Translations under genes and position numbers: made by a program
The notes under the pieces: model-generated
Databases searched by the model: none
What the model was told of the DNA's origin: nothing
What the model saw: only the letters and a program-made list of their open reading frames with translations
From: Eutreptiella sp. 'Long Island Sound 2002'
Lineage: Eukaryota; Protista; Euglenida
Length of the DNA: 64,000 nucleotides
Reading direction: 5' to 3'
Assembly: GCA_964036045.1 (NCBI GenBank)
Contig: OZ038379.1
Span: 65,534,001-65,598,000 of the forward strand
In this document: positions 3,668-34,369 of the stretch, in pieces
Position numbering within the stretch: position 1 is the stretch's first letter
How the letters are laid out: each line of letters opens with the position of its first letter

Positions 3668-3702
3668 ATGAACAAAACTACCTTTCATATAGGTACCAAG
3701 GG
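3668..3702 (-). repeat. Family A right TIR (35 bp)
   Basis: Reverse complement CCCTTGGTACCTATATGAAAGGTAGTTTTGTTCAT matches the left TIR at 12783 at 28/35 positions. Confidence 0.85.
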
Positions 3703-11384: not shown

Positions 11385-11439
11385 ACGAGACGTTCCAGTC
11401 TCCAAGTCTTCGGCGACACCTGAAGAAACAAGTTTTTAC

Positions 11440-12339: not shown

Positions 12340-12782
12340 CTACTTTCGTGCATGCCCATACTGCGCCTAGTCCATGGCAATGGGAACGCCTGCAACACTG
12401 TCTGATGGCATTTGTTGTGAAGTGCCTTGCCAACGTGGAATGCATGCATAGCTGAGGGCATTATGTGCACACCAAGGGACGCCGGAGCCAATGGAAAAGA
12501 AATTAGGTCCATCAGCGACAAGCAGTGGGAGAACTGGAGGCCACAATATGGAGCCTTTGGGGGGTTATTGGCTTCCTTGCCAATAATGCGCCTCGCTGGT
12601 GCAATGAAAACCCCTGCACCGCTGAGTGATGGTATTTGACGTGTTATGCCCTGCCCACGGGAAAGTCATGCACATTTGAGGGCATTACGTGTGCGCTAGG
12701 GGACGCCCCGGCCAATGGAAAGGAATGGGTTCCATCGGGGACGGGTACTGGGAGAATCGGAAGGCACAAGTTGGACCCTTTG
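12340..12782. repeat. ~225-bp repeat family, ~2 units, interrupted by family A insertion
   Basis: The unit reads ...GTTGGACCCTT-TG|element|TG-GGGGTTATTGGC. Joining the flanks restores the normal unit GACCCTTTGGGGGTT seen at 4145. Confidence 0.85.
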
Positions 12783-12817
12783 CCCTAGGTACATTTATGA
12801 AAAGTAATACTGTTCAT
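12783..12817 (+). repeat. Family A left TIR (35 bp)
   Basis: CCCTAGGTACATTTATGAAAAGTAATACTGTTCAT. Confidence 0.85.
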
Positions 12818-12904
12818 AATTCATTTTTCATATCTGAAAAATTCATATATGAACCATGAATTTTGAACAGCCTTTATGAACGCTTCTTTGTCCACAAATT
12901 TTTT

Positions 12905-14680
12905 ATGTCTTACCCTTGCTCCATCTTCACGGAGCCGAACATGATGCTTGGTCGGCTTAGTGGTGCCACCAGTCTTCGGGACAGCAAGTGTTATGACCTG
13001 TTGGACCAATGGATGTCATCGTCCCCCCTCATCTTGGCATGTTTCACGTAGGCAATGGACCACAATCCCCTTCTGGCGGTCCACAAAACCAACGTGCAGG
13101 CCATCCGTACGTATGCGGAGGCCCTCTTTCCCGCACCCTATCTGATAGGGCTCCTGTTCGAATTGGGTGCACCTCGGTCCGGCTTCCGTGTGTTGTCTGA
13201 GTACATCACTTGCCGGGGTGACGCCTACACCGCCCGCACCGGGCTGCCCTTCCCACAGCCCATCCCCACACGGGACCAATTTGACGCAACGTGGAAGTCA
13301 TTGACCGCTCCGCTTGCGTTGCCCCCCCCCCGGTGGAATATGCCGACCCCCCTTTGTCGGGTCGCTGTTGGCCCCTACGGTCATGGGCACAATACGTGCA
13401 CTCCCGGCCAGCCCTGTACCACTCTATTGACGGCACCCGCCCCCTCACCTTTCTTGTGCGGGGTGACGGGTGACCTTGCGCCCGTGGGAGTTGATCGCAG
13501 CTATCGGTGGGGCTATTGAACCATGGGGTAAAGGCGCGCACACCCCCCTTACTATGGGGCATCGGCATGGCCGTCGCAGGGGACAAGGATATGGTTGCCA
13601 TGGGCCATATTTGGGCTCAGGGGCGGCAGGTTGGTAGTGTGCATTTTCGTGTTCATAAGTTGTTCATAATTTGCGCGTTCATAATTCGAAAAGTGCCGTC
13701 ATAAAACGCCGTGCTGCCGATTCGTGAATTATGAACACGTTTTTTGCACACCAGTTATGAACATGCTTTATGAACGCATGTCGTGCAGTCCATTATTGAC
13801 TGCAAAAAATTTTACTGTTGCGACAGCTCGGTGCCGGCAGCGGTCATCCTTGGTGGGGAGCAGCCGTGGCTGGCGGCTGATGGGCATCAACGTGGCTCCC
13901 CAAGTGGGGAGCATTTTCAACGAGGCCGTGCGGGACAATACGGCCAAGCGGTTGAATGACGTCGCTGCTCGGAGGACAACTCAGTCGGATTCCAACAATC
14001 ATTGTCGTTTTTCAGGTGACCCGCAAAAGTTTGGATGCGGCAGGATGCACCGGCGAGCCGCTGCTGGTCATAGCCAGAAACTGGGTATTTTTGTGCATTT
14101 TGCACTGTTGCATGGCCTTCGGGAGGCTTTTCATGGCCTTTTTGGAGGCGCAGGTGGGAAATCATCCCCTTGAGGTTGCCGGGGGGGGTACAAAAAACCG
14201 GTGTTGCGTGTGGTTGGGGGCGCAGAACGCACCGGACCGGGAGGACCTGTTGTAGGACTGGGAGCAGATGGCTCCGCTGCCTGCATACGTCGAGGAGGAC
14301 CCACCGTGGCAAGCGGTTGTGGGGCTCCGATCATTGCTACGCACCGTGTACTAGCCCCTTCCGGTTGTGCCACGCCCTTCGTGCCGATCTGTTACTGCTG
14401 CGTTTCAGCAACACTGCTACGGGGAGTCGGGGTCGCACTTTTTGTTGTTCCTCGAAGAGGACTGTGATACAATGCTTGAGAGTGCGGATGCATGCGGGGT
14501 GGGATTGGCTGCCATGTCGGGGGATTTTGTGGAAAGCACAAATTTCATTTTTGAAGGGGGGATACAATGGGCATATTTCTAGGGGTGGGGGTGCGGGTAA
14601 CAGTGCAGTGGAACGTGAAGGAATGGTCGTGTAGCACATTTGGGAATGGTGGTTTCTAACCTTTGACCTGCCGTTGTTGC
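12905..14680 (+). pseudogene. Family A DDE transposase, full-length but disrupted
   Basis: LGRLSGATSL..., AIRTYAEAL...GLPFPQPI, TFLVRGDG (putative D1), intron from 13630, GGEQPWL (D2 position; D in family B), CILHCCM, VESTN (putative E). Several stops and homopolymer frameshifts. Confidence 0.72.
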
Positions 14681-14797
14681 ACTATAACACCCCACACACC
14701 GCGGCGTGCACCGCCGCTTCTCCTCTAAGCACCACCCTCCAAGCACCCTCCACCCACGCGCCCTCTGCGACCCAGCTTTATTACTCTTCACCCATCC

Positions 14798-17077
14798 ATG
14801 GACGCCGCCGAGCTGAGGAAGCTGCTGGAGGAGAGTAACAAGGCGACCTCGCCCTGGTGGTATGATGTTCGTCGGCTGTGGTTCGCGTTCATATTGCGTT
14901 CATAATTTGGTGTTCATAAAACCGAATGGGCCAAAAGCCCCTCCACCCCACCACCCCCTGCGTCCCCCTCCACTGCCACGTCCTTGATCTGTTGACTCCT
15001 CACTCGAGGAGTCGGTGGCGGATCGGGAGCCGGGGTGAGCGGGGTGGAGTCGCCCGGAGGAGTTGGCTTCACGAGGTGGAGGAGCTTGAGGTGGAGCTTG
15101 AGCTTGAGCTGGAGCTTGGGCTGCCAGCTGCTACTCCTGTGGATGTGGGTGAAGCTCTTCATAAAAGGGTTCATAAAACCGGTTCATAATTCATCAGTTC
15201 ATAAATCGGTTCATAATTCATTCATGACCGCAGTTGTGGTTGAGGGGGGAGGCCGGCCATACATGGGGCCTGACCCACGCCAACTAGCGCAATGTGATGA
15301 CCCTCCCATGGATGCAGGGAGCGCTAAACAGTTGGTACTCCCCCGATGCCCCCCTTTCTTCGAGCCCTGAGGTGACTTACATCACCCTGCGCTAGGCATT
15401 TCGCCGTCTTTTGCGGCACCGCATCCGCAACAAGGGTGCGGGGGGGGGGCCTGTCGGCACACACGGGGGGCATGGGCATGGAAGCCCCTGCCGGGAAAGC
15501 CCTTGTCCCCCATCCCCAAACCAATTGGGGCTGGGGATTTGATGCAGGCCAAAATTTCTACGGGCCCACGGGGGGCCTTGATGCGGGGGTCCCATTGAAA
15601 GCCGTGCTTCCTCCATTGGGAGGAAACGGCGTGGGTGAAGCTGCAGCGCTCCGGGCGCAAGTTGGAGTGCATCCCCCAGTGGGAATCAATTTTCGGGGGG
15701 CTGTATGTCCCGGGACAGGTGGCCTCGTACCAGGGGGCTGTCGAGCCATCCCATGAAGCCCCTTGGCCGGGCAGCCCCAGCCACCACCACCACTGTGGCT
15801 GCCGGGGGCGCCCCTGGCAGCGCAGCTGCGCATTTCCGGACCCCCCCGGGCGCCAGGTGCACCGTCAGACCATAGCCGGATTTCGAGGTATGTGCGTTCA
15901 TTCTTTGTTCATAATTCGTTCATAATTCGGCGTTCATAATTCAGCGACCCTGCACTGCCCATTTATGAACGACGAACGCGTTTTATGAACGCGTTTTATG
16001 AACGCCTTTTAATCAACGGCACTATCACAGGTCATGGACGTGGAAGTGAACCCTGCGGACGTCGCGGGGGTCTGCATCCGCTACTGGCAGGGCACCGCCC
16101 AGTACACCATCGCCCTGTCTGCCCTGTACCAGCGGCTGCTCCTCAACCTGCAACGGGGGTGCTCTTGCGGGAGTAGGAACGCTCCCGCTGCCTAACGGAC
16201 ACTTGGGTGGTCAATACGCCCTGCTGGGCTAGCCTGGGTGAGTTGGGGTGGGACGGGTGTGTTGACCAGGAGATCCTGCTGTCCAGTTGTGGGTTGAGCC
16301 CACCCGGCCCCAGCAGCCCCCGCAGCACCTCCCCGGCAACCCCCCCCCCCCCCCCCCGAGAAACCGAAGCCCCCTACCCTGCCCCCCCTCCAAACCAACC
16401 CAACCCAAAAGAACCCCCACGCAGAAGGGTACGTCCTTCGAATCGGGCAGCACCTCATCGTCGGACCACAAAGTCCACCGTGGCCATGGGAAGGCGGTGA
16501 TGGGGAAGCAGCCGCGGTAGCAAAACCGCCGCGAGGAACCCCCCTCTTTGAAGGCAGATGAGTCACCTTACCCCCCGCTTGGTGAACAGGTGTATGTGCC
16601 CGACACCGGTGGTGTCTACCTGGGGGTTGTAACCTTGGTTGGGGGGGGGGCGGGGGGAGAGTGTGGGAGGAACACCTAGGGGAAAAGGCGATGTCTCGGG
16701 TTCAGAGGCATCTGTTGCATGCCTCCCATGCTGCACCATTGACCCATTGGGAGCAGCAGAAGGTTGCAGCTGCAGGTAAGAAAGCCGCCAAGGCCAAAAA
16801 GAAGCCTAACCCCAAATCGGACGCTGACCCACCGGCCGAGCTTGCCCCCAAGCCAGCTAAGCCTGAACCCGAGGCTGAGGCTAAGCAGGCCCCTTAGCCC
16901 AAGCCCAAAGCTGCCCCTGATGCCCCCCACATGGAGGTGGATGCCCCAGCGCAACCCTCGGCCCAACCGGCAGCCCAAGCACCTGCCCAATCCCCTAATC
17001 AGGCCCCTCATGGCGGCGCCACCCAAGCCACGGCCCCCCTTTGGGAGGACCCGACAGGCCCCGGCGCTGAGGTTTAG
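14798..17077 (+). pseudogene. Family A ORF2, copy 2 (retains an extra exon ~14930-15148)
   Basis: Same structure as 1316-3286, plus a ~310-bp segment (PCVPLHCHVLDLLTPH...EVELELELEL) between TTCATAA clusters. Confidence 0.65.
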
Positions 17078-17598
17078 GGCGGCAAGAACAAGCAAGGACA
17101 AGGGACAAAGACAAACAGTGAAGTGGACAGGACATAATGAAAATTGAGCGAATTTTGTGTGCCTGTGCATCTGCTCATAGAACGCGTTCATAAAACGCGT
17201 TCATAAAACGATCGGCGCATTCATAAAAGGAAGTGTGAATGATGAATGGAATTATGAATAGAATTATGAAAAGGGGAGGATGTTTTCATAATTTGCAAAA
17301 GAATGGCGAAAATGGCAATTTTTCCAAAAGAACCCCCGGTCGACAAAAAAAAATTCACCTCGAGGGTGTTGACCCAACCCCCCAAGTTTTGAACAAAAAT
17401 TGCCCATGGGTACCCCAGCAAGAGCAAAATGCAATCATATTTCATTAAACGATTTATAATGAACAACACTACCTCTCATGTAGGTACAAAGGGTCGGGGT
17501 TATTGGCTTTTTTTGCCCATGCCACGCCTAGATGGTAGGCGGAAAACCCCTGTATTGCTGACTAATGGCATTTGACGTGTTGCGTGTTGTACACGGGG

Positions 17599-19715
17599 CC
17601 TGCCGGGAAAGCCCTTGTCCCCCATCCCCGAACCAATTGGGGCTGGGGATTTGATGCAGGCCAAAATTTCTACGGGCCCACGGGGGGCCTTGATGCGGGG
17701 GTCCCATTGGGAGCCGCGCTTCCTCCACTGGGAGGAAACGGCGTGGGTGAAGCTGCAGCGCTCCGGGCACAAGTTGGAGTGCACCCCTCAGTGGGAATCA
17801 ATTTTCGGGGGGCTGCATGTCCCGGGACAGGTGGCCTCGTACCAGGGGGCTGTCGAGCCATCCCATGAAGCCCCTTGGCCGGGCAGCCCCGTCCACCACC
17901 AGCATCACGGCCCCCGGGGGCGCCCCCCAGGGCGCCCCTCGCAGCGCAGCTGCGCATTTGCGGACCCCCCTGGGCGCCAGGTGCACCGTCAGACCATAGC
18001 CGGATTTCGAGGTATGTGCGTTCATTCTTTGTTCATAATTCGTTCATAATTCGGCGTTCATAATTCAGCGACCCTGCACTGCCCATTTATGAACGACGAA
18101 CGCGTTTTATGAACGCGTTTTATGAACGCCTTTTAATCAACGGCACTATCACAGGTCATGGACGTGGAAGTGAACCCTGCGGACGTCGCGGGGGTCTGCA
18201 TCCGCTACTGGCAGGGCACCGCCCAGTACACCATCGCCCTGTCTGCCCTGTACCAGCTGCTGCTCCTCAACGCGCAACGGGGGTGCTCTTGCGGGAGTAG
18301 GAACGCTCCCGCTGCCTAACGGACACTTGGGCGGTGAATACGCCCTGCTGGGCTAACCTGGGTGAGTTGGGGTGGGACGGGTGTGTTGACCAGGAGATCC
18401 TGCTGTCCAGTTGTGGGTTGATCCCCGCAAGCCCCGGCAGCCCCCGCAGCACCTCCCCGGCAAAGCCCCCCCCCCCCCCGAGAAACCCAAGCCCCCTACC
18501 CTGCCCCCCCTCCAAACCAACCCAACCCAAAAGAACCCCCACGCAGAAGGGCAAGTCCTTCGAATCGGGCAGCACCTCATTGTCGGACCACAAAGTCCAC
18601 CGTGGCCATGGGAAGGCGGTGACGGGGAAGCAGCCGCGGCAGCAAAACCGCCGCGAGGAACCCCCCTCTTTGGAGGGGGATGGGTCACCTTACCCCCTGC
18701 TTGGTGAACAGGTTTATGTGCCCGACACCGATGGTGTCTACCTGGGGGTTGTAACCTTGGTTGGGGGGGGGGGGGAGGGTGTGGGTGGAACACCTAGGGG
18801 AAAAGGCGATGTCTCGGGTTGAGAGGCATCTGTTGTATGCCTCCCATGCTGCACCATTGACCCATTGGGAGCAGCAGAAGGCTGCAGCTGCAGGTAAGAA
18901 AGCCGCCAAGGCCAAAAAGAAGCCCAACCCCAAATCGGACGCTGACCTGCCGGCCGAGCCTGCCCCCAAGCCAGCTAAGCCTGAACCCGAGGCTGAGGCT
19001 AAGCAGGCCCCTTAGCCCAAGCCCAAAGCTGCCGCTGATGCCCCCCACATGGAGGTGGATGCCCCAACGCAACCCTCGGCCCAACCGGCAGCCCAACCAC
19101 CTGCCCAAACCCCTAACCAGGCCCCTCATGGCGGCGAAACCCAAGCCACGGCCCCCCTTTGGGAGGACCCGACAGGCCCCGGCGCTGAGGTTTAGGGTGG
19201 CAAGAACAAGCAAGGACAAGGGACAAAGACAAACAGTGAAGTGGACAGGACATATTGAAAATTGAGCGGATTTTGTGTGCCTGTGCATCTGCTCATAGAA
19301 CGCGTTCATAAAACGCGTTCATAAATCGATTGGCGCATTCATAAAAGGAAGTGTGAATGATGAATGGAATTATGAATGGAATTATGAACAGGGGAGGATG
19401 TTTTCATCATTTGCAAAAGAATGGCGAAAATGGCAATTTTTCCAAAAGAACCCCCGGTCCAGAAAAACAAATTCACCTCGAGGGTGATGACCCAACCCCC
19501 CAAGTTTTGAACAAAAATTGCCCATGGGTACCCCAGCAAGAGCAAAATGCGTTCATATTTCATTGAACGATTTATAATGAACAAAACTACCTTTCATATA
19601 GGTACCAAGGGTGGGGGTTATTGGCTTTTTTTTCCCATGCCACGCCTAGATGGTAGGCGGAAAACCCCTGTATTGCTGACTAATGGCATTTGACGTGTTG
19701 CACGTTGTAAACAGG
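17599..19715 (+). repeat. Tandem duplication of ~15487-17598 (right half of family A plus flank)
   Basis: Junction ACACGGGG|CCTGCCGGGAAAG at ~17598. A second right TIR ends at 19611, followed by TG. Confidence 0.9.
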
Positions 19716-22649
19716 GATTGGGTGCACAGTTGAGGCTATTATATCAAAACCAGGGGACACCGCAACCAATGGAATAGGAATGGGGTCCATCCGGGACGGG
19801 TACTGGGAGAACCGCAAGGCACAAGTTGAACCCTTTGGGGGTGATTGGCTTTTTTTGCCCATACTACCCCTCGTTGGTAGACGGAAATCCCCTGTAGCAA
19901 TGACTAATGGCATTTGACGTGTTGTGTGTTGCCCACGAGGAGTTCATGCACAATCGAGGGCATTGTTTGTAAGCCAGGGGATGCCGCAACCAATTCAAAA
20001 TGAATGGGTTCCATCGGGGATGGGTAGTGGGATAACTGGAAGGCACAAGTTGGACCCTTTGGGGGTTGTTGCCTTTTTTTGCCGATACCACGCCTAGTTT
20101 GTCGGCTAAAAGCCCCTGCACTGTTGACTAATGGCATTTCACGTGATGTGCGTTGCCCACGGGGAGTTTATGCACGGTTGAGACCATTATGTGTAAGCTA
20201 GGGGACGCCACAGCTAGTGGAAAAGAAGGTGGGTCCACCGGGGATTGGCACGCGGAGAGCTACAAAGCACAAGTTGCACCTATTGGGGGGTTGTTGGCTT
20301 TTTTTTTGCCGATGCGGCGCCTAGTTGGTAGAATGAAAACCCCTGCACTGCTGATTGATGCCATTCGCCTGTTTTACCTTGCCCGCGGGGAGTTGATACA
20401 CAATTGAGGGCATTATGTGTACGCTAGGGGACGTAGCAGCCAATGGAAAAAGGAATTGTGCCCCTAGGGGACGGGCACTTGGAGAACCGCGACGTACAAG
20501 TTGCACCCTTTCGCCGTATTGGCCCTTGTTGCCTGCTTCTTTGCAGAGCAATGTTTGGTTCACAAGCAAGGAGTTGAGGGGGTGGCCCCCAAGCTGTGAC
20601 TACAGCAACCGGCGGAGGGACCACTGGAGGAGGCACCAAAACAACAAGCGAACGGAGCACCGAAGGAGGCACGAACTCAGCACGGGCCAGCAGAGGCAAC
20701 ACCAAAGGACACAAGAAAGGAACAAGCAAAGACGGCAAAAAAGAAGGCACCAAAGCAAACACTAACGGATTGAAGCCGCAAGCGCCAAAGAAGGCACCAA
20801 AGCAGGCAAGGAGGGAGCACCACGGAAGGTATCAAAGGCGCAAGTGCCAAAAGAGGTACCAAAGCAGCCAATAGAGGCAACACCATGTGAGCCGCAAGCG
20901 CCACACGAGGCACCAAAGCTGCAAAGGCAGCACGAGAGGATGCACCAAATTAGCCAGCAAAGGTAGCACCAAAGGACACAGCAAAGTAGCCAGAAAAGAT
21001 AGCAAAAAAGAAGGCACCAATACACCCGGCAGAGGCACCTCCAACAAAGGAATCAAAGAGACAAGCAGCAAACGAGGCACCACGGCATCCATCAGAGCAA
21101 CTTTGGGAATGGTTCACATCCGGGTTCTTCATACCCCGTTCGGGTCCCGACTCCGATAACTCCACTTATGCCCGATGCGGCGCCAAGTTGTCCAAGGATG
21201 AATTCACCAAGCTTACGGATCGCGAAAGGGAGGCATACAAGAAAAGCGGCTCACTAGAACGTCCCCACAACACGTGTAATTGCCCCCATTGGCCACTCAT
21301 CGCAGCACAGGGAGTGGAGAGCAATGTAAAGGGAGGAGTATCGTTATGCCGCAAAGAAAGCGGTAGGGAAGGTGTCCAAAGGTGGTCGGCCCGTCGGTTT
21401 GTATGTCACAATAGCAAGGGACACAAGGACAGGAACCGAACGCGCCAATGCCGTATTTTTACCTTCATGGAACCATGGAGGTGACGTGGGATCCCAGCGA
21501 GTTTATACAAGCAAGTCATTGGCTTGAGCAGCAGGGGTTGGCGGCAGAGGCAGAGGTAGAGGCAAAAGGACCGGGGAAGGGACATGCCGCACACCACCCG
21601 CAAGCACAGACACAGCAACCGCAAACAGGACATGCCGCGGATCAATGAGAACAGAGATCGCAATGCAAGCATCCCGAAAATCGACGCAAAAGCTTGGGAG
21701 CACACCAAGCCGCCCACAATATCGGCCCCTGACCCAACATCGGCCCCTGACCCAAGAAGGCAAGGGCAATGGCAAGGGCAAGCCCGGCTTGAAGAAGGCG
21801 CGCTGCACATCCACGGGAGCACCACTAGTGTCTCAGTCGGACCTGGAGAAGTCACAGTCTAGCGAACCGTTTTTTTTTGACGCATGGCCGGATATTGCTA
21901 AGTGCCTCGGCATTAGGCCAAGCACGGCCAAGTACAAGGCCATCGCGAACATGTGGGACCTGCTGCAGGCCCTCTATTGTACATATCGGGGCCCTAACCC
22001 ATTGAATTGTGCTGTTGTGGCCCGCGATTTCCGGCGCCACTGTACTGTTGGAACAACATCATGGTATCTACTAAGCCTTGAGCATGATGTAGATACCATG
22101 TTACAGAACATTAAGCCATTTGGCTTGGTCTAGCGAACCGTTCTAGCGCTGATCTAGCCACCGCCGTACCGCCGCCGCTAGAACGTCGCTAGAACGCCGC
22201 TAGAACAGTTGCCTAGAACGCCGCTAGAACGCACCTGCATTTTGTTTGTTTCTTCAGGTTGTCAACGTGCAGACGTGTGGAGCAGACCCCCGCGGGGTGC
22301 GCGTGGAGTGGCGTGATGGCGGAGGGCGGACGCGCCTCGTGGGGGTCACCGAGATGAGCTGGATGATTTGGACGAACCCCAATTTGGCCCTCCCGGTGCC
22401 GGAGGGTTTGGGGAGGTGGGAAGCAGGCAGGAGTGCAAGGGGCATGGACCCGCAGCGCAAGGGTTGGAGGAGGTTGCAGGAACGGGCGGGGGATGACAGC
22501 AGCAGCAGCACCACCACCACCAGCAGCAACAGCACCACCACCACCACTAGCAGCGGGGGGAAGACACCCCCCCCCCCCAAACCGACCGGGCCTGACCATG
22601 GTCTAAGGTGTAGAGGAGGGCAGTCATGGTCAGGTTAAACCAGGTGCGA

Positions 22650-25469
22650 AGCTCCTCACGACTGGGCGTGGGTGCCTCTTCGGGGCATGGTAACGGAGTC
22701 GGGTATAAGCGTCAACGGGCGCGAAACACCGCGTGCGCCATATTTTATGCACACATCCGGCGCTTAGCCCCCCCAGAGAACACCGAATAATTCAGTTCAT
22801 CCCAGTGCCTGCCTGCTTCCTGTCACACGCCACAAGTGGTAGAGTACGCCCAAAAATCAGTGCATGCATTGACAGAGTAGACAGTGCCGGGCGCCACCTG
22901 CAGCGACGCTCACGCCTCTCCGCACCGTCCGCCGCTGCGCCTCCGTCCGCACCTGTGTCCCTCCTCCCGATCCCCGCCTTCGATCTCCCATCTGCTTGTG
23001 CGTATGCCCTGTCGCCTCCACTCGGGGGATTGCCCAGTGCGCTGTGCTGGCCATCGACCCCACCCTGCTTCACTCCCATACCGACACTGGTGCCTGTGGG
23101 GGGGCCCCAGGCACTGCTCAGCGCCAGAGAGAAGCGATCACCCCCGCCGAGGTGTGAGTCGTCAGCAAGATGTACAACAGGGCACCCTGTTGTGCAACTG
23201 CATGTACGGCCCCAGCAAGACCGACGTCACAGCGGTACCCGTGACAGATGCCATCGTGCGATCGTTCGGGTGGTGGATCTCGGTGCTTGACACCTTACGT
23301 GAAGTGCTGTCTCAGCGGCGACCACCAAACCCGACTTTAGGACGGCCTCCGCGTGGATAAATCTGTGGGTTGCCATGTACTCGGCCTGGGCCGATCGGAT
23401 GTCTCTGAAGGTCTCTAGGGCCGCCTCGTTTGACGCAGCAGGGCTCCCGACGCCGCCCCCGTGTGATCCGGCAGTCCTGAGGTCAACTATGTGCGCCCTA
23501 GCGACCACAGCGAAGCCCTTCCGCACTATCCCGCCGCGTGCCCTGGCTGCCCGTGCAGCCCCAGGCGCTGGTGCGCCCGCTGCTCCCAGCCAGCCTGTTG
23601 TCACCGACACCTCTGCTCTACAGCAGGAGATGGTTCTCACCCTGGCGGTCTGCAGGGCGCTGGCCCCGGAAGCAGTCCACACAGCTCCGTGCAGCCTCGG
23701 CCGCCACCTGTCCCCACTGCCGTCGGCCGTATCGGTGCCGTTCGTCATCAAGGCGAAAATACGCTCTCAGCTGGCCACCATCCTGTCGTCGAACCGCCTC
23801 CTTTTCGGGGCAGACGCGGCTCAAGCGGCGACGCAGCTGAAGCAGTGGCGCAAGTACATCGCCGCCAAGCCGCCATCTGCGCCGGCTGCCCCCCCGCAAC
23901 AGCAATTGCTCGCAGAGCTGCAGGCAGTGCTGAAGGGTCTCGCTGACTCTACCGACTGGCCTGCAGCGGTGGGAGCCATCGCCCCTTTCCTGTCCGGCAG
24001 TGTTGCCACGGGGCAGCAGCTGCTGGATGGTTCCTCTTGGGCTGCAGAATGGTGCGCCAAGGGGTTCTAGGCCTCTGGCTCATGCAAACCCTTGACATCG
24101 CGCCTAGGGATGTGTGCGGCACCATTGCTGATAACCTCGCCACGTCCTTTGGCACCACTGGTGGTTCCCCCTCGCACTGCGTGTGGGTGGACGCCATCCG
24201 TCGCCATTACGCCAGCTACTTGGCGGATGGCCCCATAAAAGAATTCTATGTGCCTGCGCAACATGACACGCGCCGCCTGGACCTGGTTGCAAGCCGGCAC
24301 GCAGAAGCAGACCGGCTGGCGAAAGCTGGCCTCCGTCTCGCCCGGGCGCGTGTGATTCCCCTCCCTTCCCTGCTAGCGGACCTCCACCTCCTGTACTGTG
24401 AGGGCCGTCTAGTGTGCAATGTGGTCTCCACCCTGGATGCCCTGTACACGCAGACCTGTCAGGCGCGTGCCCCCTCCCTTGAAGGCTATGACACTGCATG
24501 CCAGGAGCGGTGCCTGCTATCCTCCCTCCTCCCCAACAGAGCGCTGAAGTTTGCATGTTGGCTCCGCATGGCCCCCCGCACCCATGTATCCCCCAAAGCA
24601 GAGCTGCACTGCTACCTCTGCCGCGCCCCCTGTCACTCTTGGGGCCAGCATCTGTACTCAGACTGCATGTCCACAACGCTTGCATGTCTGCATGGCTTCA
24701 AGACTTTGGCATTGTCACTGCAGCTAGAGTCCCCCGTCTAGTGGCTCGCAGTCGACCACATCAGGGTGTCCGTAGACGGCGGCGCCCTGCAATGGACTCT
24801 GGTGCATCCGGCAGCAGCCCCTGAGTCTGACCCGCTGACACATGTGGCACTGTCCTGGTCACGGGCGATCGCTGTGCGCCCAGGGGCGCCACTGCCAGCG
24901 GAGCCCTGTGACGCGGCTGTGCGTACATTTTTGTCTACCATAGCTCAGTGGGAGGTTCTGGATCCTCTATCGCGCCGGGAAGCCATGTTCGAAGCGCCTG
25001 ACCCCCCCCCCACCGCTGGCCTGGCCCGTTTCCCTGGGCGGCGTTCGCCGTCGCCTCGGCGTTTGCCCACCTAGGGGCTCCAGCCTGCAGCCCCAGAGAC
25101 TCCGTGCCGTTCGGCCACTCCTCACCCCCTCCCCCCGACGTACACCCCCCCCCATGGCCCTTCGATGTGCGCCTGGCGACGGAGGCACCACCCCCTGGAT
25201 GGGCGGGGGTCTGGTTCAAGCCCAACCCAGATGTGCTCCTGGCCCCCCCAGACTGGGTACACGTTACACTGTCCCCATCCCTCGCCCTGACCTACCCTGC
25301 GCGTGTGTTGTGTCCTGCTCTCGGGGACGCCCTCCTCTCTCTGACCCGCGATAGCTGGGACCCCAGACAGGCCGCCGCAGACGCTCCAGAAATAGAGGAC
25401 CCAGCGCACAGAGCAAACGAATTGGCTGCCCTGTCGTGCAGCTCAGACTCTGATGAGGGGGATGAATAA
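22650..25469 (+). mobile_element. Non-LTR retroelement derivative (ORF1-like + RNase H + CCHC finger, no RT) nested in family C ORF2
   Basis: GSSWAAEW..., TIADN and FYVPAQHDTRR...RHAEADRLAK (RNase H, 23990-24330); CYLCRAPCHSWGQHLYSDC (24610-24666). Boundaries are approximate. Copy 1 (6750-8590) is truncated inside RNase H. Confidence 0.6.
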
Positions 25470-25855
25470 GCGAGAACGTGCAGCTCCCGTGCCCGTGTTC
25501 GTGCCCATGCCCGTGCCATGATCAACCCTCGTGAGAGGCCACCGGGTGGGGGGGCCGGTGGCTGTCCGATGCCCATATCACCAAGTTTGCAAATGCAGCA
25601 CGCTGGGACGTTGAGCAGCCAGACCCACGTGCCTGGGTCCCTGGGATCAGCCCCCGGCAAAGCTCAAGATATCCATCCATCCATCCATCCCCCCCCCCCC
25701 AATGCCCCCAAGAAAAGACCCCGCCACTTCGAGAGTAGCCACGAAGAGGTGCCCCCCCCCCCCAAGGGCAGCCCAGCAAGCCGAAGGCCAGGGAGGCCCC
25801 AGGCCAAGGGCAAGGGCAAAGCCACCCCCCCCCCCCAAACCCCAAGCCCCCCCCC

Positions 25856-26308
25856 TTGCAAGAAAGGGGCCGGGACCCCTATGGCAATGTGCCGGATGTG
25901 GGGGACACCCGGTATGTCCCTTGGGCGGAGGCGGGCAATGGGGGTACCGTTAGCGAAGTGACGATGTTGGGGGATTGGAATGAGGAGTTGGACACGGGGA
26001 ACTGGTGGGTGGTGTCGCAGGGGTCCAATGGGGAGGGGGGCGGAGGGAAGAAGGGGAAGAAGGGGAAGAAGAGGAAGCGGGGGAAAGAGAGGGGCACCTT
26101 CCGGGTGCCGGGAGAGCTTCTCTTCCGCACCCGGGAGGAAGCGGAGGCCCACCTCCGGGTGGCCTTTGGGGCCTGGGACGACGGGCGCGACGGGGATGAC
26201 GGGAATGACGAGGGGCACGAGGGTGGTGACAAGGGGGAGGGGGGTGACAAGGGGGGTGAGGTGGGGGGTGACAAGGGGGGTGAGAAGGAAATGGACAGGG
26301 GGGGCTGA
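25856..26308 (+). pseudogene. Family C ORF2 C-terminal Tudor/KOW-like segment
   Basis: VGDTRYVPWAEAGNGGTVSEV...NWWVV...FRVPGELLFRTREEAEAH aligns with family A LGEQVYVP...VWVEH...RVERHLLYASH. Confidence 0.55.
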
Positions 26309-26412
26309 GAAGGGGGTTGCCGGGAGCAAGGATGAGCCCCGGCAACCCCCCAGCTCGCAGGAGGGGTAAGCTGCGTGTCGCGACTCGCGAATGGGGGCAT
26401 GGGGGGGCACAT

Positions 26413-26532
26413 GGGCTAATCGGGCTAACCGGGCTAATCGGGCTAACCCACCACCAAGTGACCCGGCGCCGGCTCGCCAAGTGACCTTCCATGTGACCTA
26501 TGGGGTGCGGTGGGGGGCTAACCGGGCTAACC
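26413..26532. repeat. GGGCTAA(T/C)C 9-bp tandem repeats
   Basis: Four copies at 26413-26448 and two at 26515-26532. Confidence 0.85.
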
Positions 26533-26889
26533 GGGGGATGGGGGGGGGGGAACCCGGCGCTCCGTGAGTCAGGTCCAGCATTGGGACCCTGTGATTGGCC
26601 ACGGCTGGCCATGGTAGCCGGTGCAGCTTCTCTTTGAGGAGTGGCGGAGCATTCATATATACTGTTCTAGCGGCGGTCTAGCGAACCGTTCTAGGGGCGT
26701 TCCAGCGACGCTCGCTAGAACGTCGCTAGAACGCCGCTAGAACGAAACATTTTTCGACTCAAAAATCAGGCGAAAACAGTGAAATTGTGAAAAAAAAAGT
26801 ATGGGCCGCCGAGTACGGATAGGGGGGTCTAGGTTAGACACCTCACCCCTCTTTTTCTATCCCCTCTAGCCGCTCTAGCCGGTTCTAGG

Positions 26890-26926
26890 CTAGAACGAGA
26901 TTGGGTATTGTAGCGTGTACCAGGGG
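26890..26926 (-). repeat. Family C right TIR
   Basis: Reverse complement CCCCTGGTACACGCTACAATACCCAATCTCGTTCTAG. Confidence 0.78.
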
Positions 26927-26932
26927 TAAGGG

Positions 26933-28850
26933 ATGTGCGAAGCAGAAGTTGAGGAGTCGGAGAGAAAACTAGCGAGTATGGGCACGGGGGAACATGGAGT
27001 GAAGGGAGAGGAAGGGTGGGCCGAGGTGTCGCCAGGCGTGGAGGGGCACCACGAGGTGAACAGTGTTGTTTTTGAGGCGCTAGAGGTCCACTCACTTGCA
27101 TGTCACTGAGCGGATGCGCGGGTTGTTGGTGTCAACTATTGCAGCCAAAGCTGCCACCTTCCCTTGGACAAGGGAGACGGTGGCCCCCCCTTGCCCTTGC
27201 ATGCTTGCATCCTGAAATCCCCCTACCCCGCCATCTACACCCTTCGTTGCCTGTTGCAAAACTTCATTTGGAAACAGTTGCACATCAAGCCTCAAGCCAT
27301 TGCCCGTGCCGCTGGGAGGATTGCGACGCACCACATCGGATTTCAGTGATGTGGGTGATAAGACCATGGTCGAGGTACCCAACACCCCTCCCCAATGACT
27401 CGTACCCTACTAACGCACCGGACACACGGCTTGACCACCTTAACACGGTGCGAGACAGTTCCTGGCACAAGGAGAAGATGCCGTGTGCGTAATTGCGGCA
27501 AGTCCGAGCCGCGCTGAAGGAGAACGTGGACATGCGAGTGCACGTATCCCCCTTTGCCGCAAGCCTTATGGGCCAATAGGGGCAGAAAACTGTGTTTCGT
27601 TCTCGCCTAGGACCTGTTCTGGCGAAGTTCTAGCAAGTTGTACTGCCGGTGATCCATTTTCTAGCGCTAATAATCCCTAGAACGTCGCCGGAAGGTTGCC
27701 GGAATAAGTTACTAGAAAGCCACCGGAACACATTCTTTTGGCTGTCCTTTTTGTAGGTCGAGTACATCCCGATTAACTGAGATGAGGCGCGAGCACAACG
27801 GTTCATCATGCAGCGACCGGGCTACGATCCCCGGCCCATCCATGTCACCACCGTGCTGCAGCAACTGCACGTGCAGCCAATTTCACCACTCGACGTGCTG
27901 ACTGCCTTGGCCGACCACTTGGCCTCCCGTACTAGCCTCCTCGAGACACAAGTGGAGGGATGGGGAAGCATCCACGACTTCTCCCCACACCCCGCTCACC
28001 GCCACCAACTTGTAGCCAAGGTCATTGGTGTCCCCCCCCAAGACCCCCACCTTGGTCCCAAAACCTGGCCCCTAGTCTAAAAGAAACTCCAAGCCCCAAG
28101 GCAAAACAAATTTCTACTCCCAAGAGAAAACAAACCCCACCCAAAACCCAAAGCCCCCCCCAACCCCCCCCAACACAAGAGGAAGAGGTTTCTAGGCGAG
28201 TCCTCCACGGAGCCCTCCTCAGAGTCCTCATCGGACACCTCCTACTACTCCTTCTCCCCCCTTACCTCGAACTTATCCGCTTGCTTCGTGGACTGGCCTG
28301 TGCGACGCAACAAGAACCCCGAGCCACCAAAACATAAGACCCACCCCCCTCTAACGCCCCAACAAGGCGCCCAAGCCCGGCCCAAAGACAGCCTGCTCGC
28401 CCCACCCCCACACCCACGTCCCCAACGGTAGACATCTCCACGGAGACCGCCCCGCCCAAACCCAAGCCCAAGGCCAACGCGAGAGGCGCGGAGGGGTGTT
28501 AGTACAAAGCAAGCAAAAACATTTATGTTGTTTTTTGCGACCAGGGGTTGTGGGGGATGGAGAACGGCAAGCAGGCCCTTGCCGCGGGTGTACACTCCCC
28601 AAAAAAGGGATGTGTGAGGTTTTCGGAGGACAATGAATTTTTTTGCGTGCCAAATGCCGCCCTGTGGCGGACCCGAAGGCAAGACGAAAAGTTCCTTGAG
28701 AAGAAGAACGAAGGAGAATGTGGCGGGTGAAGCGAGGGAGGGTGACGAGGATGAAGGGCGCGGAAGCCAACGGCTCGGACGCGGACGGGAATGGGGATGG
28801 GGATGGGGATGGGGCAGATGAAGGGGATGGGCCAAGGGTAGGTGCAAGTG
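26933..28850 (+). pseudogene. Family D ORF2 remnant (fourth related family; termini not found)
   Basis: ILKSPYPAIYTLRCLLQNF resembles A FLRAPWSLTLPCARQF. A TTCTAG/CTAGAA-rich intron ends TTTGTAG at 27756. The next exon is VEYIPIN...IHVTTVLQQLHVQP. NIYVVFCDQG...FCVPNAALWRTRRQ matches C FRVPGELLFRTREE. Confidence 0.55.
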
Positions 28851-29631
28851 CACCGGGGGCTAACCGAGATGACAGTATGAGGCTCTAGATCGCCGGGATG
28901 GAGGGTGACGGGGCGGAGGGTGACAGGGTGGTGGTCGGCAATTGAGAAGGGAGGTAAGTTCCGGGGCGCCCTGCGCCCCGCCGACCGCACACCACGCACA
29001 GTTATGGGAAGTACAACGAGACTATCCCCATGTCCCCTTGCTGGCACCCTAACTGGCGATGTATGCTTACTTACCCTGTATCTGCACTCTGCTTTTTGTG
29101 TCGCTTGCCTCTTCTAATGGTGTTCTGGTAATTTGTTGCGGCGGTTTTTGATGGTTTTCCGGCAAAAATTGTCTTTGAACGTAACTATTTTTCGCACAAC
29201 AACATGGAAGACAACAAGTGTGAACGTACTAGCGGGCTGCCCCTAGGCTAGCAAACAACACAATTTTCTAGCATGTATGGCTGTCCTTTGTTGGGGGGGG
29301 AACGAACTTTGACCGTTTTTTGTTCGGGCCATTTTGCTTTGAACACCGCAAGCATTTGGCTCGAACAACCTTCCAGTTCAAGCGCGAATCAATGGACAAG
29401 CCTGATGGTCATCTAATTTTGATTTTGTCACCCGATCTGAAGGTTTGGAGACCATCTAGATGGCAAGGGTTTTTTTTCCTTGCTCTATGGCTCCCAGCTC
29501 CAAGTAATGGTAACCCCGGGTACCTGTCTGAAACATAATGACGTTCAAAAAAGGAGCATTCAATATTGAAACTTTCACTTTCGAACTTTCAATTTCAAAC
29601 AGTTTTTTGAACCAAATTTTGTTTTTCGAAA

Positions 29632-29787
29632 TTTTTTCTTTGAGCTAATGGTACAGCATGATGCATGTTGTGCACCCCCGACGGTACACCCTAGTTTTTT
29701 CAACAAAAATTTATCTTTTGAACTTTTTTTTTTGAGCTAACAGTACAGCATAAGGCATGTTGTGCACCCCCGACGGTACACCTTAGT
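29632..29787. repeat. ~65-bp direct repeat pair in family B left subterminal region
   Basis: TTTGAGCTAA..GTACAGCAT..GCATGTTGTGCACCCCCGACGGTACACC.TAGT at ~29632 and ~29724. Confidence 0.85.
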
Positions 29788-29899
29788 GTGCTTCATTTGT
29801 TATGGGGGAGGTTTGTTTGATGATCCTTTGGTATTCGTGCCCTGTGCATACCGCTGTTTGTATAGCCCTTCAGTTTGTTGTTTCTTCTTTGGGGCCAGC

Positions 29900-31700
29900 A
29901 GTATGAGCGCGCGCACGGCACCGCTCCATGGGCGGGACGTGATTGCGGAGCTCCGGGCGACATTGGTTCGTCTGAGCGGGGCGGCCAACCTATGGGATGC
30001 ACGAGTCGGCCACGTATTGGCCCAATTGCGGGTATCCTCCCCTCATTGCAAGGCACGGTGGGAGCAAGCCACCGTGGAGGGTGGCCACAAAGTGGTCCGT
30101 GCGGCGGAGGACGCCGCCATACGGGAATACCCGGAGTCGTTGATCACTCCGCTTGGCCCCGTAGAACTTGTTGTGGCCTTGAAGGCCCCAAAGTCCCGCT
30201 TCCGTGCCCTGTCAGAGTTCTTCATCCGGCAGGGTCTACAGTATTCCTTGAAGACCGGACGGCCGCTTCCGCGGCCCATTTGTACCCAGGAGGCCTTGGA
30301 CGCGGACTAGCGCACTCGTTGTAACCCTCTCCACCGTCGGCCCCTGTCACCGCCGGTAGCCCGCCTTCGTCGGGCCGCTTGGGGCCCATCGCTTCTTGGG
30401 TCAATTACGTGCAATCGCGCAACGCTCTGCGCGATTGCATTGACTTGTCACACCCCCTCATGCTCATTATGCGGGGCAATGCGTTCCCATGCGTAGCGGA
30501 AAGCTGGAGGCATCGCGTGGGCCAACCAATGTGCCCGCGCCCGCCAACCATCGTACTGCTGGGTCATCGGAATGGCGGTATACGGTGACAAGGAGATGGC
30601 GCGACTTGGTGCCATATGGAAGGACAACCTGCAAGTATGGTTTGCACGAACACATAGGTATTTTGTTTCCCTATCTAGTCGTTCAAATTGCAATGTTCAA
30701 ATTTCCAAGCACATTCAAGAACGGGCAAAACTGCCCAAGTTCTATTTTTTGAACTTCAAAAAAACATTTTTGAACGTTCAAAATTAATATTTGTTTTCAC
30801 ATTTTGCACCACATCTGCGACACCGGCCGCTTTACGTGGGCCAACATGGAGCCTGCTGCCACCGTTCGCTGCGCCGGAGATAGCCCTTGGATCCGCCGCT
30901 CGGTTGGTGTCTCAATTGCCCCCCAAGTGGGGTCAATCTACAATGAGGCAATATGGGGTTCCACCACCAAGCGGTGGCGAGGTAGCCAACAGCCCCACAC
31001 CCTGCAACAGGATGCACACCACCACGTGCAATACTTGCTGCATGGCCATAGCCTGCAACATGCCGCTTGCGTCGGCAAGCCCCTGGCGCGTATGGCACGG
31101 CAACACATTTTCATGTGCATCCTGCACTGCATCATGGCAGTGGGCCGGTTGGTGGTGCAGTTCCTGGAAGCCCCATGCAGTGACCTGGATAAGGTATTGC
31201 GGGCTGGGGTGCAATCCGTTTTGGTTGGGGCACGCACCGGGATACGCCTCGGCTCTGCGGCCTCCCCATTTTGGGAGGAGGTGTACCGTCTGCTGCAGGC
31301 TTGGGGGCACGTATAGGAGGCGGACTGCCCCGACGCCACACACCGCGGTGGTTGCGCGGTACTGGAGATGCGGGAGCTGTTGTCGCAGCTATGCCGCACT
31401 TACCAGCATGGGCCGGCCCCGCATTGTCGTGGCCCAGCGAGCCACTTCCGGGAACACATGGCCGCCAAATTTGGGTCCTAGTACCTCCTATTTTCGGAGG
31501 GGGACTGCGATGATGTCTGGGCGGCACTACAACCCCACGGCATAGCCTTGGTGAGCCAGGCCTTTGTCGAATCGGTGAATAGGATTTTGAAGTTGGGTTA
31601 CAACGACCATTGGAGCGTGGGGGCGGCTGCGCGGTGCATCCCACACTCCGGGAGGCCCGTTTTGTGGCGCAAGTGTGGGAATGGTGGTTAGTATAATTCG
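29900..31700 (+). pseudogene. Family B DDE transposase, disrupted, intron from 30635
   Basis: LVRLSGAANL, AIREYPESL...GRPLPRPI, LIMRGNAFPC, AVYGDKEM, RCAGDSPWIRRSVG, FMCILHCIMAVGRL, YLLFSEGDCD, FVESVN, VWEWW. The intron donor (LQ|GTATGG) is at the same codon position as in family A. Confidence 0.75.
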
Positions 31701-31728
31701 ATCGATGAGTTGGGCTCAATGGGGTCCG

Positions 31729-33598
31729 TGGAGGACATCGGGGCGGCCCCATAAACCTGGATCCACGAGGTGGTGCCCACCGGCGCCCTCTCCAAGGTGG
31801 TCGCGGTGCCCTGCCTGCCCGCAGCTCTTCACAAGGAGCCACCTGCCCTAGACGCCCCACTGGGTCGGGGCCCCTTGAACGCCCCTTCACGCTGCAGTTT
31901 GTGTTGCAGTTCACGCTGCAGGGTGCCATCCAGCACGTGAAGCCCCCTAGGACCTGGTTGTGGGTGGAGTCCGAGGAGGGGGCTGGCTGGCGCTGGACAA
32001 TGGGCAAGCGGGCGGCTGCATTGCCTACAATGCTTGGCTCCTCGGGGTATTGGAGCGTCAGATTGGGGCAAGCTGAGCGGGTTTGTGCTGTATAACCCTG
32101 CCCAGGCCCACAGGTCTGCAAGCTGCCATCCGGGGACAACGTTGACGCGGCCCGAGACTAGGCGCCGCTTTTTCCGGGAGGCGGACGCCGTCGAGGAGGA
32201 GGCCCAGACACGGCAGGGCCAGTTCCGCGCCGGCGTGGCATCCCTGCGGGCACATGCCAGCAGCCAAGAAGTACGGGTTTGCCTACCCCCCCCCCCCCCC
32301 TGTGGTGTGCCCCGTAGTGCGCCAATTTAACTGTCGGTGACTTATGATAGGACGTTCAAAATTTGAAAGTTCAAATTCAAAAACGAGCAATCCTGGTACA
32401 ACTGTCGTTTTTGAAAGTTCAAAAAGGAAATTGAAAAAACCAAATCTGTACCTTTTTCCCTGCTGTGCCTGTCAATTTTTTTCAAGTGACCGACATCCAC
32501 GCGAAAGCCTCGCATGCGGCGGGCGTTCGTTTGGAGTACTAGCGGGCGGAAAGCGGCACCGAAGACGTGGTCGGCATTGGCGGCCTCTACCGCCTCCTCC
32601 TCAGTCTTTCGACCGCGGGCCTGCACGTCCTGCGCTGCCTCCCCGAATGGCAGCAGGGCCGCGAGCTCGGCGCCGCCGCAGCCATGGGTGCCGCTGGTGG
32701 AGGTTGGCAAGACCTCCAAACCCGCGGGCAAGGCGCCCCCCGCACCGGCCCCCGTGAAGGCGACAGAGAGCCCGCCGCCAGCCCCGCCAGCCCAACTCAA
32801 GTGTGCGTCCGACGACCAGGGGCGGGTGTGCGGGCAGAGCCGGCCCCGCCGGCCCCGCCCTTCCTCTTCCTCTTCGAGCTGGAGCTGCACCGAGAGCACA
32901 AGCGAGGTGGAGGGGGTCAACCCTGTCGCGCCCAAGCCGCCGCAAAAAAAACAGCGGCAAGCTGCAAGCGCAAGGGGAAGGCCACGCGGGAAGGGGGGGG
33001 GCAGGCAGCGCAAGAGGGGGTCAAAAAGGAGAAGGGGGCACAAGGGAGGGGGACCGCGGAGGGGAAGCCGCAGGGGGTTGAGGGCAAGGAAGGGGGGGGA
33101 GGGGCAGCCGTAGGTCCACCGGTTTGGGTGCCGTACCTACAAGGGGACGAGAAGGGGAAGGTGGTTGGGATCGTAAAGGGGGGCGGCAAAAGTAGGTGCG
33201 GTTCGGCAAAGGGGAGACACCGTACAATGTGGCGGCACATTGGTGCTTTGCCACTGAGGTGATTGCCACGCTGCGGTGGCCAAAGGCCACAGGGGCAAGG
33301 GGGGGGGGAAGGAACCCAGCAGCCCCCCCCCCCCCCACACACACAGGGAGACAAGGTGGCTAGCAAGACCCCAACCCCCCAACCGAAGGAGGCCTTCGCA
33401 GAGCCCACCATCGCGGGGCCCGACACCGGGTACGCGCCCGCGGATTCTGCCACCTTGTCCGTCCAAGAGGCCCATGACACCCAAAATCTTTGGGAGTCTG
33501 CCGAGTCCCACGAAGTCTCAGGGACAACCGGAGCCCATGGGGGTGTCCGCGGAGGATATCCATGTGACAATGGGGCTGCAACACGTCAAAGGCTGTGA
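31729..33598 (+). pseudogene. Family B ORF2
   Basis: Intron ~32271-32485. Exon VTDIHAKASHAAGVRLEY*...GIGGLYRLLL matches A AGVCIRYW...LSALYQLLL. Tudor-like VGPPVWVPYLQGDEKGKVVGIV at ~33110-33180. Confidence 0.62.
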
Positions 33599-34369
33599 TG
33601 TTTTGCATGTGTGTATGCTTACGCTATGGGAAGGTTGTTCAATTTTGAAAGTTCAAACGTCAAAAAACAGGTCAAAATCCTCTTTTGAAGCAATTCTGCT
33701 GGTTTTGGAACGACTTTTGCAACGATTGAAACATGTGACAAACACCACCACCGTCTCAAAAACACACGGGCATCCATTATCAATCACGAAAAACCGCCAC
33801 GGCAATAGGTCGCAAAATTGGTCAAAAGCACTATGCAAGTTTTGAAAAATAGCGTTCAAACGTCAAAAAACTCCGATTCCCTTGAACGTCGTTATCTTTT
33901 AGACAGGTTCTCGGGGAAGCGTTATGTTCCTAACGGCCCACTGGTGGGCCGCGCGTTATTTTGTCCCTGTGTGTGAAGCTTTGGGCATGTGCAAGTATAT
34001 GTATCCATCAAGACCCACAACAAATAGCCAGCTGCAAACAACAACGGGATCCACCATCACATGAAATAAGTGTACTTCCCATTCCGTGATTATCGCGAAT
34101 AGCGATGGTTTGATACCCAATACATACGTGCCCCAAATTGTTTTCATTATACAGGGTACACCCTTACCAAGATTGAATTCTCGGCCTGAGCTAGTGGGGG
34201 AACAAATATTGTTGCGGAGACTTCAACGGCAAATAAGCTGCACATTGCAATAGTAGATGAGAGCGGTACAAAAGGTGCTCCATATGAAGTGTATCGAGCC
34301 CTTTTAGCACGCAAGCTAACCTAGGATCATTCCGGAAAACCATGCTTTTCGACCTTTTTTTAGCACTTT

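Follow-up and report, generated by a model that had tools for sequence, protein, structure and literature searches.

Transposases of the CMCT clade, which comprises EnSpm, Mirage, Chapaev, Transib and RAG1 and includes the ESTA, Plavaka and Lanisha groups, carry a C(2)C and an H(3-4)H motif between the second aspartate (D2) and the glutamate (E) of the catalytic triad, and their elements mostly have CA..TG ends and target-site duplications (TSDs) of 2-5 bp (Kojima 2025, PMC12730594). For ESTA, a likeness to RAG1 at the HHpred level has been reported (PMC12730594). Chapaev elements have CAC..GTG ends and TSDs of 3-4 bp (PMC4079192), and the canonical Transib TSD is 5 bp, with 3-bp and TA duplications described in a preprint for Transib-lineage elements without InterPro hits (bioRxiv 10.64898/2026.08.26.747230). 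In the literature searched, no publication linking Euglena with RAG1, Transib or EnSpm was found; a 2025 paper on viral insertions in E. gracilis mentions only abundant transposases and recombinases predicted by HHpred. Here we describe two elements, A and B, in a 64,000-nucleotide stretch (the window) of the euglenid Eutreptiella sp. 'Long Island Sound 2002' (assembly GCA_964036045.1, contig OZ038379.1, positions 65,534,001 to 65,598,000). Both are dead copies of real cut-and-paste DNA transposons. They very probably represent two families of a single class II DDE transposon group that forms an unnamed lineage of the CMCT clade, set apart from EnSpm, Mirage, Chapaev and Transib, as those groups are described, by missing zinc motifs, CCC ends and a second gene of probable Tudor-like type. 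The group does not amount to a novel type of mobile element.

Element A begins with CCCTAGGTAC (12783) and finishes with GTACAAAGGG (17493), while B runs from CCCCGGGTAC (29514) to CTCGGGG (33916), and the CCC...GGG ends proposed in the initial annotation can be read directly at both boundaries. The imperfect 35-bp terminal inverted repeats (TIRs) of that annotation are also present: those of B are 86% complementary over 35 nt, and those of A are weaker, with about two-thirds identity across 35 nt and small indels. The terminal 10-mer CCCYDGGTAC occurs eight times in the window against 1.3 expected, a count reached in none of 100 shuffles. Contigs of other B copies, from four DNA runs, diverge from the window exactly at 29514.

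B is flanked by AA on either side (Table 1). The left flank of A ends in ..cccttTG and its right flank, in element A itself, reads TC-gggg; both duplicates of the right end of A (3703-3704 and 19612-19613) read GGG-TG-gggg. A is flanked by a satellite of about 224 bp, whose units are 72-88% alike (3703-4624, 11477-11916, 12353-12782, 17496-17598 and 19612-20533) and which supplied an empty site. An uninterrupted unit paralogous to the flanks of A reads cccttTGgggg at 19832-19841; in BLAST, the left flank aligns with 19752-19837 and the right flank with 19838-19931, so that the two alignments meet at the adjacent bases 19837|19838. Because the empty unit holds a single TG and both duplicated right ends carry TG, the TG of A was duplicated and one copy mutated later. 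The independent 2-bp duplications originally proposed, TG for A and AA for B, thus hold, that of A through the empty paralogous unit.

Additional loci were fetched from a public assembly containing the family (ENA ERZ25074135), and the four further insertions found in them, in loci L007, L009 and L011, all have 2-bp duplications (Table 1). Matching dinucleotides flank all six insertions (TG, AA, AA, TA, GG and CC), the match extends to 3 bp in none, and no target consensus is evident among the six. By a rough estimate (~0.07 per site), six matching dinucleotides would arise by chance with a probability of ~1e-7. The ends of all five families seen start with CCC(C/T)N and finish with its complement. 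L010, with flanks GT and AT, was left out of the count: the locus holds three copies of that left end together with its flank, and the pairing is unreliable. L008 has no recognisable right end, and CCCCTGGTAC at 15727 (paralogues at 1932 and 17839) is without subterminal repeats and was taken as a chance occurrence. The family-A insertion in L009, with its TA duplication, hits a GTTCTAG repeat of the family-C copy at 4786-9513.

Read depth along B (window 29100-34300) in DNA runs is uneven. The 5' 1.7 kb and 3' 0.6 kb reach 15-80 times the depth of the flanks (the 5' 1.7 kb 30-80 times), and the middle 4-5 times. With ends far deeper than the middle, most B copies are internal-deletion derivatives, and derivatives that keep both ends were found (L007). 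The TIRs, the six 2-bp TSDs, the empty site and the high copy number together demonstrate mobility.

These observations bear on whether the sequences could be a dispersed host gene family, a domesticated recombinase spread by segmental duplication, and make that explanation highly improbable. Large segmental and tandem duplications in the window did copy A, and transcripts of an intact intronless relative occur in five runs, both of which speak for it. However, TIRs and exact 2-bp duplications at six unrelated sites, the empty site, deletion derivatives with both ends, the nesting of one copy in another (L009) and the high copy number with unrelated flanks all speak against it. It is contradicted for A, B, L007, L009 and L011, and it retains force only for the transcribed intronless gene. 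This gene (L001-L005; Logan contigs of SRR21130503, -05, -06, -15 and -16) lies on a ~1.8-1.9-kb contig that is identical in five runs, and its open frame of at least 478 aa contains all three catalytic motifs; the L001 frame, of 502 aa, is the longest uninterrupted relative. The gene may be an expressed active transposase or a domesticated one.

A and B share no nucleotide similarity, yet nine collinear tblastx blocks (35-58% at the amino acid level) connect them. Their transposase introns lie at one shared codon position, 25-35 codons before D2, and the second gene is likewise placed, in agreement with the gene order and intron position first reported. The protein motifs named in the initial annotation (RGDG, GD.PW, LHC and ES.N) are present as well and match D1, D2, a C(2)H motif and E, respectively, with RGDG as D1, GGDxPW as D2, CILH as C(2)H and ESxN as E. 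An intact family-A exon-1 product, P0155, is 251 aa long, starts with MLVRLSGA and ends with IWAQ, and exon-2 products (P0011 and P0008) extend from GGDxPW through ESxN and RGGG, giving a spliced transposase of ~600 aa. The relatives P0089, P0151 and P0102 form an intronless subgroup. Introns and subterminal regions are filled with the same family-specific 7-8-mer: GTTCATAA in A, GTTCAAA in B, GTTCTAG in C and TTAATAT in L011. Motif-built intron stretches lie at 13640-13790 (A) and 30660-30800 (B) of the window and at 7903-7999 of L011. No AG was found close to the expected 3' end of the B intron.

Both window copies are pseudogenes with stops and frameshifts, and a catalytic aspartate is mutated in each: D1 in B and D2 in A. 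In A, a frameshift lies in the C10 run at 13322-13331, a stop (13471-13473) directly follows RGDG, D2 is changed to E (GGEQPW), and further shifts and stops are present. In B, D1 is changed (RGNA), and frameshifts accompany stops at 30307-30309, 31314-31316 and 31479-31481. For a frame change that A and B have in common, near 13320 in the former and 30320 in the latter, a tiny intron and a programmed frameshift were weighed and ruled out. It is no family feature, since P0155 and P0162, intact proteins of family A, continue across the site in a single frame; the shift of A falls within the C10 run, and B has a stop as well as a shift.

The two-gene layout is real. The second open reading frame (ORF2) is better preserved in L011, as a 322-aa frame at 10588-11556, and its C-terminal ~55 aa are conserved (VPYPxGVxxGxV..VWVExPG..V.R.LL), whereas the remainder is low-complexity and Pro/Lys-rich. 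With the L011 domain as query, it is found in L007 (E 6e-11), L009, L010, L008, A, B and C, and it is kept in four families. A tblastx comparison among the 3' halves of A, B and C missed it, and it was seen only with the L011 query. Between B and L008, amino acid identity is below nucleotide identity in all frames, which points to decay. An AlphaFold2 model of the domain (predicted local distance difference test, pLDDT, 80) shows a four-strand barrel followed by a helix. The PDB entries closest to it in Foldseek are PHF1, SMN, TDRD3, the LBR Tudor domain and the MRG15/MSL3 chromo-barrel (target template-modelling (TM) score 0.72-0.75, root-mean-square deviation (rmsd) ~2.4 Å, 53-57 residues), and the domain is probably Tudor-like. 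Its conserved residues include the Y of VPY and the W of VWVE. The ORF2 candidates match nothing in Pfam or the ESM Atlas.

To obtain a fold for the transposase, the 502-aa frame of L001 was modelled with AlphaFold2 from a 134-sequence alignment (pLDDT 87.3, pTM 0.86). Among solved structures, Foldseek matched RAG1 (E 1.3e-12, TM 0.62/0.57), the ProtoRAG protein BbRAGL (E 1.4e-7) and HzTransib (E 1.7e-6) far above Hermes (E 0.02, TM 0.25); the P element was not among the Foldseek matches listed. VIA-align gave the same order, with Z 23.4 for RAG1 (428 residues, model 7-479 on RAG1 470-1004), 20.6 for BbRAGL, 20.2 for HzTransib, 13.7 for the P element and 9.7 for Hermes. On the model, D115 lies in strand 1, D196 right after strand 4, and E427 opens a helix; the spacing D(81)D(about 232)E has offsets that fit D600, D708 and E962 of RAG1, with D1 in (R/K)GDG, D2 in GGDxPW and E in ESxN. 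Closer unnamed proteins from cnidarians, Mucoromycota, red algae and others are present in AFDB and the ESM Atlas, where TM reaches 0.81 for cnidarian proteins, 0.74 for Mucoromycota proteins and 0.71 for RAG1. The protein-language-model neighbours are RAG1 and arthropod RAG1_RNase_H clusters (0.94-0.95), none of which carries Transposase_21. By its predicted fold, the transposase is thus RAG1/Transib-like. The initial suggestion that it resembles RAG1, Transib and Chapaev more than EnSpm is supported by the fold and the neighbours, both of RAG1 type; EnSpm-type proteins share the fold.

Sequence searches recovered the family itself. With the exon-2 piece of B as query, phmmer run exhaustively against 1.84 billion representatives returned 186 proteins, and a profile of the N-terminal half returned 153 more; among the matches listed, all are unnamed and without a Pfam domain, and the sources shown are one ENA assembly and Logan contigs. 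One match, P0082, a 1275-aa repeat protein, was set aside as unrelated. Pfam gave no match for 10 ORF pieces of A and B. None of the Pfam models, those for RAG1 and Transposase_21 (PF02992) included, matches a family member, and the Pfam RAG1-family search of 16 members was empty at E up to 10. The family profile yielded chance matches only against all PDB sequences, with no RAG1 or Transib among them, and word-indexed searches (with P0089 and with a profile of the family alignment) found euglenid-type entries only and no named relatives.

The model also has the predicted architecture of the CMCT clade: a DDE core of RNase H fold in which a long helical insert separates D2 from E, and a RAG1-type layout. 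The zinc ligands of the clade are a different matter. None of 47 members has C(2)C in the 45 aa that follow D2, and three of 21 have H(3-4)H in the 50 aa that precede E, at positions that are not conserved; in place of the clan zinc motif, the family alignment has an invariant C(2)H ~80 aa past D2. The C(2)C/H(3-4)H motif is lost or was never present in the euglenid lineage.

Two placements within described groups compete with an unnamed lineage. The first, which we consider unlikely, is a divergent member of the Transib superfamily, the direct relatives of RAG1, with a shortened TSD. The best solved-structure matches are RAG1, ProtoRAG and HzTransib, the length of ~600 aa is Transib-like, the language-model neighbours carry RAG1_RNase_H, and TSDs of 3 bp and TA are reported for elements of the Transib lineage that lack InterPro hits (10.64898/2026.08.26.747230). 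Against these points, no sequence match to Pfam RAG1 or to PDB RAG1/Transib appears even with a profile, the ends are CCC rather than CAC/CACAATG, the TSD is 2 bp without a TA preference, and the C(2)C and H(3-4)H of Transib and RAG1 are absent. Proximity to Transib is moreover biased by PDB content, as that database holds no solved CMC structure.

The second, about equally doubtful, is a divergent EnSpm/CACTA or Mirage element, that is, CMC proper, for which a 2-bp TSD, two genes and subterminal repeats are typical. CACTA elements have two genes and subterminal repeat arrays, CMC TSDs are 2-4 bp, and EnSpm-type proteins share the fold, all in favour of this placement; typical EnSpm transposases, on the other hand, are much longer than the euglenid protein. 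Transposase_21 (PF02992) and the other Pfam models associated with CACTA match no member, the zinc motifs of CMC are missing, the ends are not CAC, and the nearest language-model clusters are of RAG1 type, with none carrying Transposase_21.

Several points weigh against the assignment of A and B to an unnamed CMCT lineage. Both copies in the window are broken, and none of those recovered has two fully intact exons, although L011 comes close. The searches connected the protein with no named family at the sequence level, and homology rests on predicted structure; the modelled L001 protein is neither A nor B but belongs to the intronless subgroup, which is ~30% identical to them. EnSpm-type (Transposase_21) proteins have the same fold at similar TM, so that fold alone cannot place the branch, and to our knowledge no CMC structure has been solved. 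For ORF2, the Foldseek E-values are weak (0.01-0.05). We therefore file the elements as an unnamed lineage of the clan and in no named superfamily: the fold and TSD fit, the zinc motifs and CA ends are absent, and the fold cannot place the branch.

Taken together, the copies suggest an autonomous element of ~4.4-5.1 kb with four parts. These are TIRs of 35-38 bp beginning CCC(C/T)NGGTAC; family-specific subterminal repeats of 7-8 bp; a transposase gene with one intron, whose ~600-aa product has a predicted architecture of RAG1/Transib type that starts at the dimerisation/pre-RNase H region and runs through to the C-terminal domain; and a downstream gene for a low-complexity protein ending in a probable Tudor-like barrel. 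A transposase dimer would bind the TIRs and subterminal repeats, nick the DNA and, by analogy with RAG and Transib, may excise the element via a hairpin on the flank. Integration would use a stagger of 2 bp and favour no target sequence strongly (TG, AA, AA, TA, GG, CC), and the probable Tudor-like barrel of ORF2 may hold the complex at marked chromatin. The window copies are inactive relics, afterwards copied by segmental duplication.

The origin of RAG1, the protein that assembles antibody genes, from a transposon is a classic question, and its known relatives (Transib, ProtoRAG and CMC) come mostly from animals, fungi and plants. The euglenid enzyme is predicted to share its fold, yet is missed by ordinary sequence searches. 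The family is abundant and putatively recently active in the euglenid, and it widens the range known for the RAG1 fold. A compact enzyme of ~600 aa may serve the comparative biochemistry of hairpin-forming transposases, and for the annotation of euglenid genomes, the family is one that standard domain searches overlook entirely. More tentatively, the euglenid elements could be a lineage of superfamily rank outside both Transib+RAG1 and CMC, with a RAG1 architecture, no zinc module and a chromatin-reader partner of its own. If so, the RAG1-type fold would predate the zinc module and be present in early-branching eukaryotes (Discoba), and the Tudor-like ORF2 would be a targeting factor with a role analogous to that of the RAG2 PHD finger.

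Table 1. Coordinates of the elements and related features, in the window unless a locus is named.
Feature	Positions	Strand	Remarks
Element A, ends complete, coding regions dead	12783..17493	+	224-bp satellite on both sides
A left TIR (CCCTAGGTAC .. TGTTCATAA)	12783..12817	+	
A right TIR	17459..17493	-	
A left TSD copy, TG	12781..12782	.	single TG in the uninterrupted unit cccttTGgggg, 19832-19841
A right TSD copy, TC	17494..17495	.	reads TG in both duplicates of this end (3703-3704, 19612-19613)
Paralogous empty site, single TG, in satellite unit	19836..19837	.	
A transposase exon 1	12941..13629	+	start MMLGRLSGA; D1 RGDG about 13459-13470; broken
A intron, GT..AG, phase 0	13630..13788	+	boundary deduced by comparison with relatives that lack the intron; GTTCATAA copies in direct and inverted orientation
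A transposase exon 2	13789..14838	+	GGEQPW (mutated D2), CILH, ESTN; several frameshifts/stops
A ORF2, probable Tudor-like domain	16521..16834	+	frameshifted in G run near 16650
A', 96% segmental duplicate of A, cut by window start	1..3702	+	not a separate insertion
Tandem duplicate of the 3' 2 kb of A plus flank	17599..19611	+	
Element B, ends complete, coding regions dead	29514..33916	+	left boundary supported by loose ends at 29514
B left TIR	29514..29548	+	35 nt, 86%
B right TIR	33882..33916	-	35 nt, 86%
B left TSD copy, AA	29512..29513	.	
B right TSD copy, AA	33917..33918	.	
B transposase exon 1	29903..30634	+	start uncertain; D1 mutated RGNA; stop 30307-30309; frameshifts
B intron, same codon position as that of A	30635..30800	+	5' GT; 3' boundary approximate; GTTCAAA arrays
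B transposase exon 2	30801..31702	+	AGDSPW, CILH, ESVN; stops 31314-31316, 31479-31481; late frameshift
B ORF2, probable Tudor-like domain	33110..33260	+	frameshifted
Third transposase family fragment (profile positions 220-306)	21873..22127	+	followed by C-type motif arrays; paralogue ~5963-6220
Family C ORF2, probable Tudor-like domain	25883..26173	+	Lys-rich insert
Family C right end (..GTACCAGGGG)	26865..26926	-	GTTCTAG subterminal repeats
E-type pieces (72-78% identical to L011-type fifth family)	57570-58050, 8752-9001		
L007, family A	6839-9309		TSD AA
L009, family A, nested in family-C copy	about 6843-9257		TSD TA
L009, family C	4786-9513		TSD GG
L011, fifth family	6841-11986		TSD CC; TIR 38 nt, 89%

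Duplication has reshaped the window around A. In BLAST, positions 1-8591 are a segmental duplicate of 13484-24072 (95-96%), and 15487-17598 is repeated in tandem at 17599-19716, a 2.1-kb duplication carrying part of A and its flank. A single insertion event underlies A', A and the additional right end at 19611, which were multiplied by segmental and tandem duplication rather than by transposition. Fragments of further families, noted at the outset, are present as a C-type right end with ORF2, the third transposase fragment and the E-type pieces; two L011-type pieces at 57570-58050 are oppositely oriented. Elsewhere in the window, 58001-64000 has a GC content of 0.62-0.70 and a GC skew of +0.26 to +0.36, unlike the remainder, and a 187-bp unit is present in three tandem copies of 95% identity at 10825-11385. 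Rfam has no match in the window.

Compared with RAG1 and ProtoRAG, the euglenid family has a predicted architecture that aligns over ~430 residues, the same triad order at a comparable spacing (D81D232E here, D108D254E in RAG1), and elements likewise bounded by inverted repeats (TIRs or recombination signal sequences). Identity is 11-12%, however, with no sequence-level match; the TSD is 2 bp and not 5, the ends are CCC and not CAC, and the C(2)C/H(3-4)H zinc ligands, a RAG2-like partner and the N-terminal RING and nonamer-binding domains are lacking. Transib is alike in fold (HzTransib, 6PQN and related structures; Z 20.2, model 2-500 on residues 24-494), in protein size and as a cut-and-paste TIR element, and unlike in its 5-bp TSD, its CACAATG-like heptamer (CAC(A/T)(A/G)TG-like), its single gene and its zinc motifs. 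As the initial annotation had it, both Chapaev and canonical Transib differ from A and B at the ends or in the TSD: Chapaev has CAC..GTG and 3-4 bp (PMC4079192) against CCC..GGG and 2 bp here, and Transib 5 bp (bioRxiv 10.64898/2026.08.26.747230). With EnSpm/CACTA, the 2-bp TSD is compatible (2-3 bp), while the ends are CCC and not CACTA/CAC, and the family has no Transposase_21 (PF02992) match. Mirage, compared by description only, matches in TSD length (2 bp).

The closest predicted structures are the unnamed cnidarian and Mucoromycota proteins (ESM Atlas; AFDB A7SJ52 and others), with TM 0.81/0.74 by query, rmsd 3.8-3.9 Å over 430-476 residues and an AFDB E of 1.6e-15. Identity to them is ~12-17%, and sequence search from the euglenid family does not reach them. 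The ORF2 domain resembles the Tudor and chromo-barrel readers (PHF1, SMN, TDRD3, MRG15) in its modelled four-to-five-strand, SH3-like barrel followed by a helix, and differs from them in an identity of only 13-20%, weak E-values and the lack of a Pfam match. Relative to the CMCT clade as a whole, the CA..TG ends of most lineages are replaced by CCC in all five euglenid families seen, whereas the 2-bp TSD falls inside the 2-5 bp range, and many of its elements have subterminal repeats and accessory genes. The combination of a predicted RAG1 fold, CCC ends, a 2-bp TSD and no zinc motif, with the named groups compared by description, supports the undescribed lineage suggested in the initial annotation.

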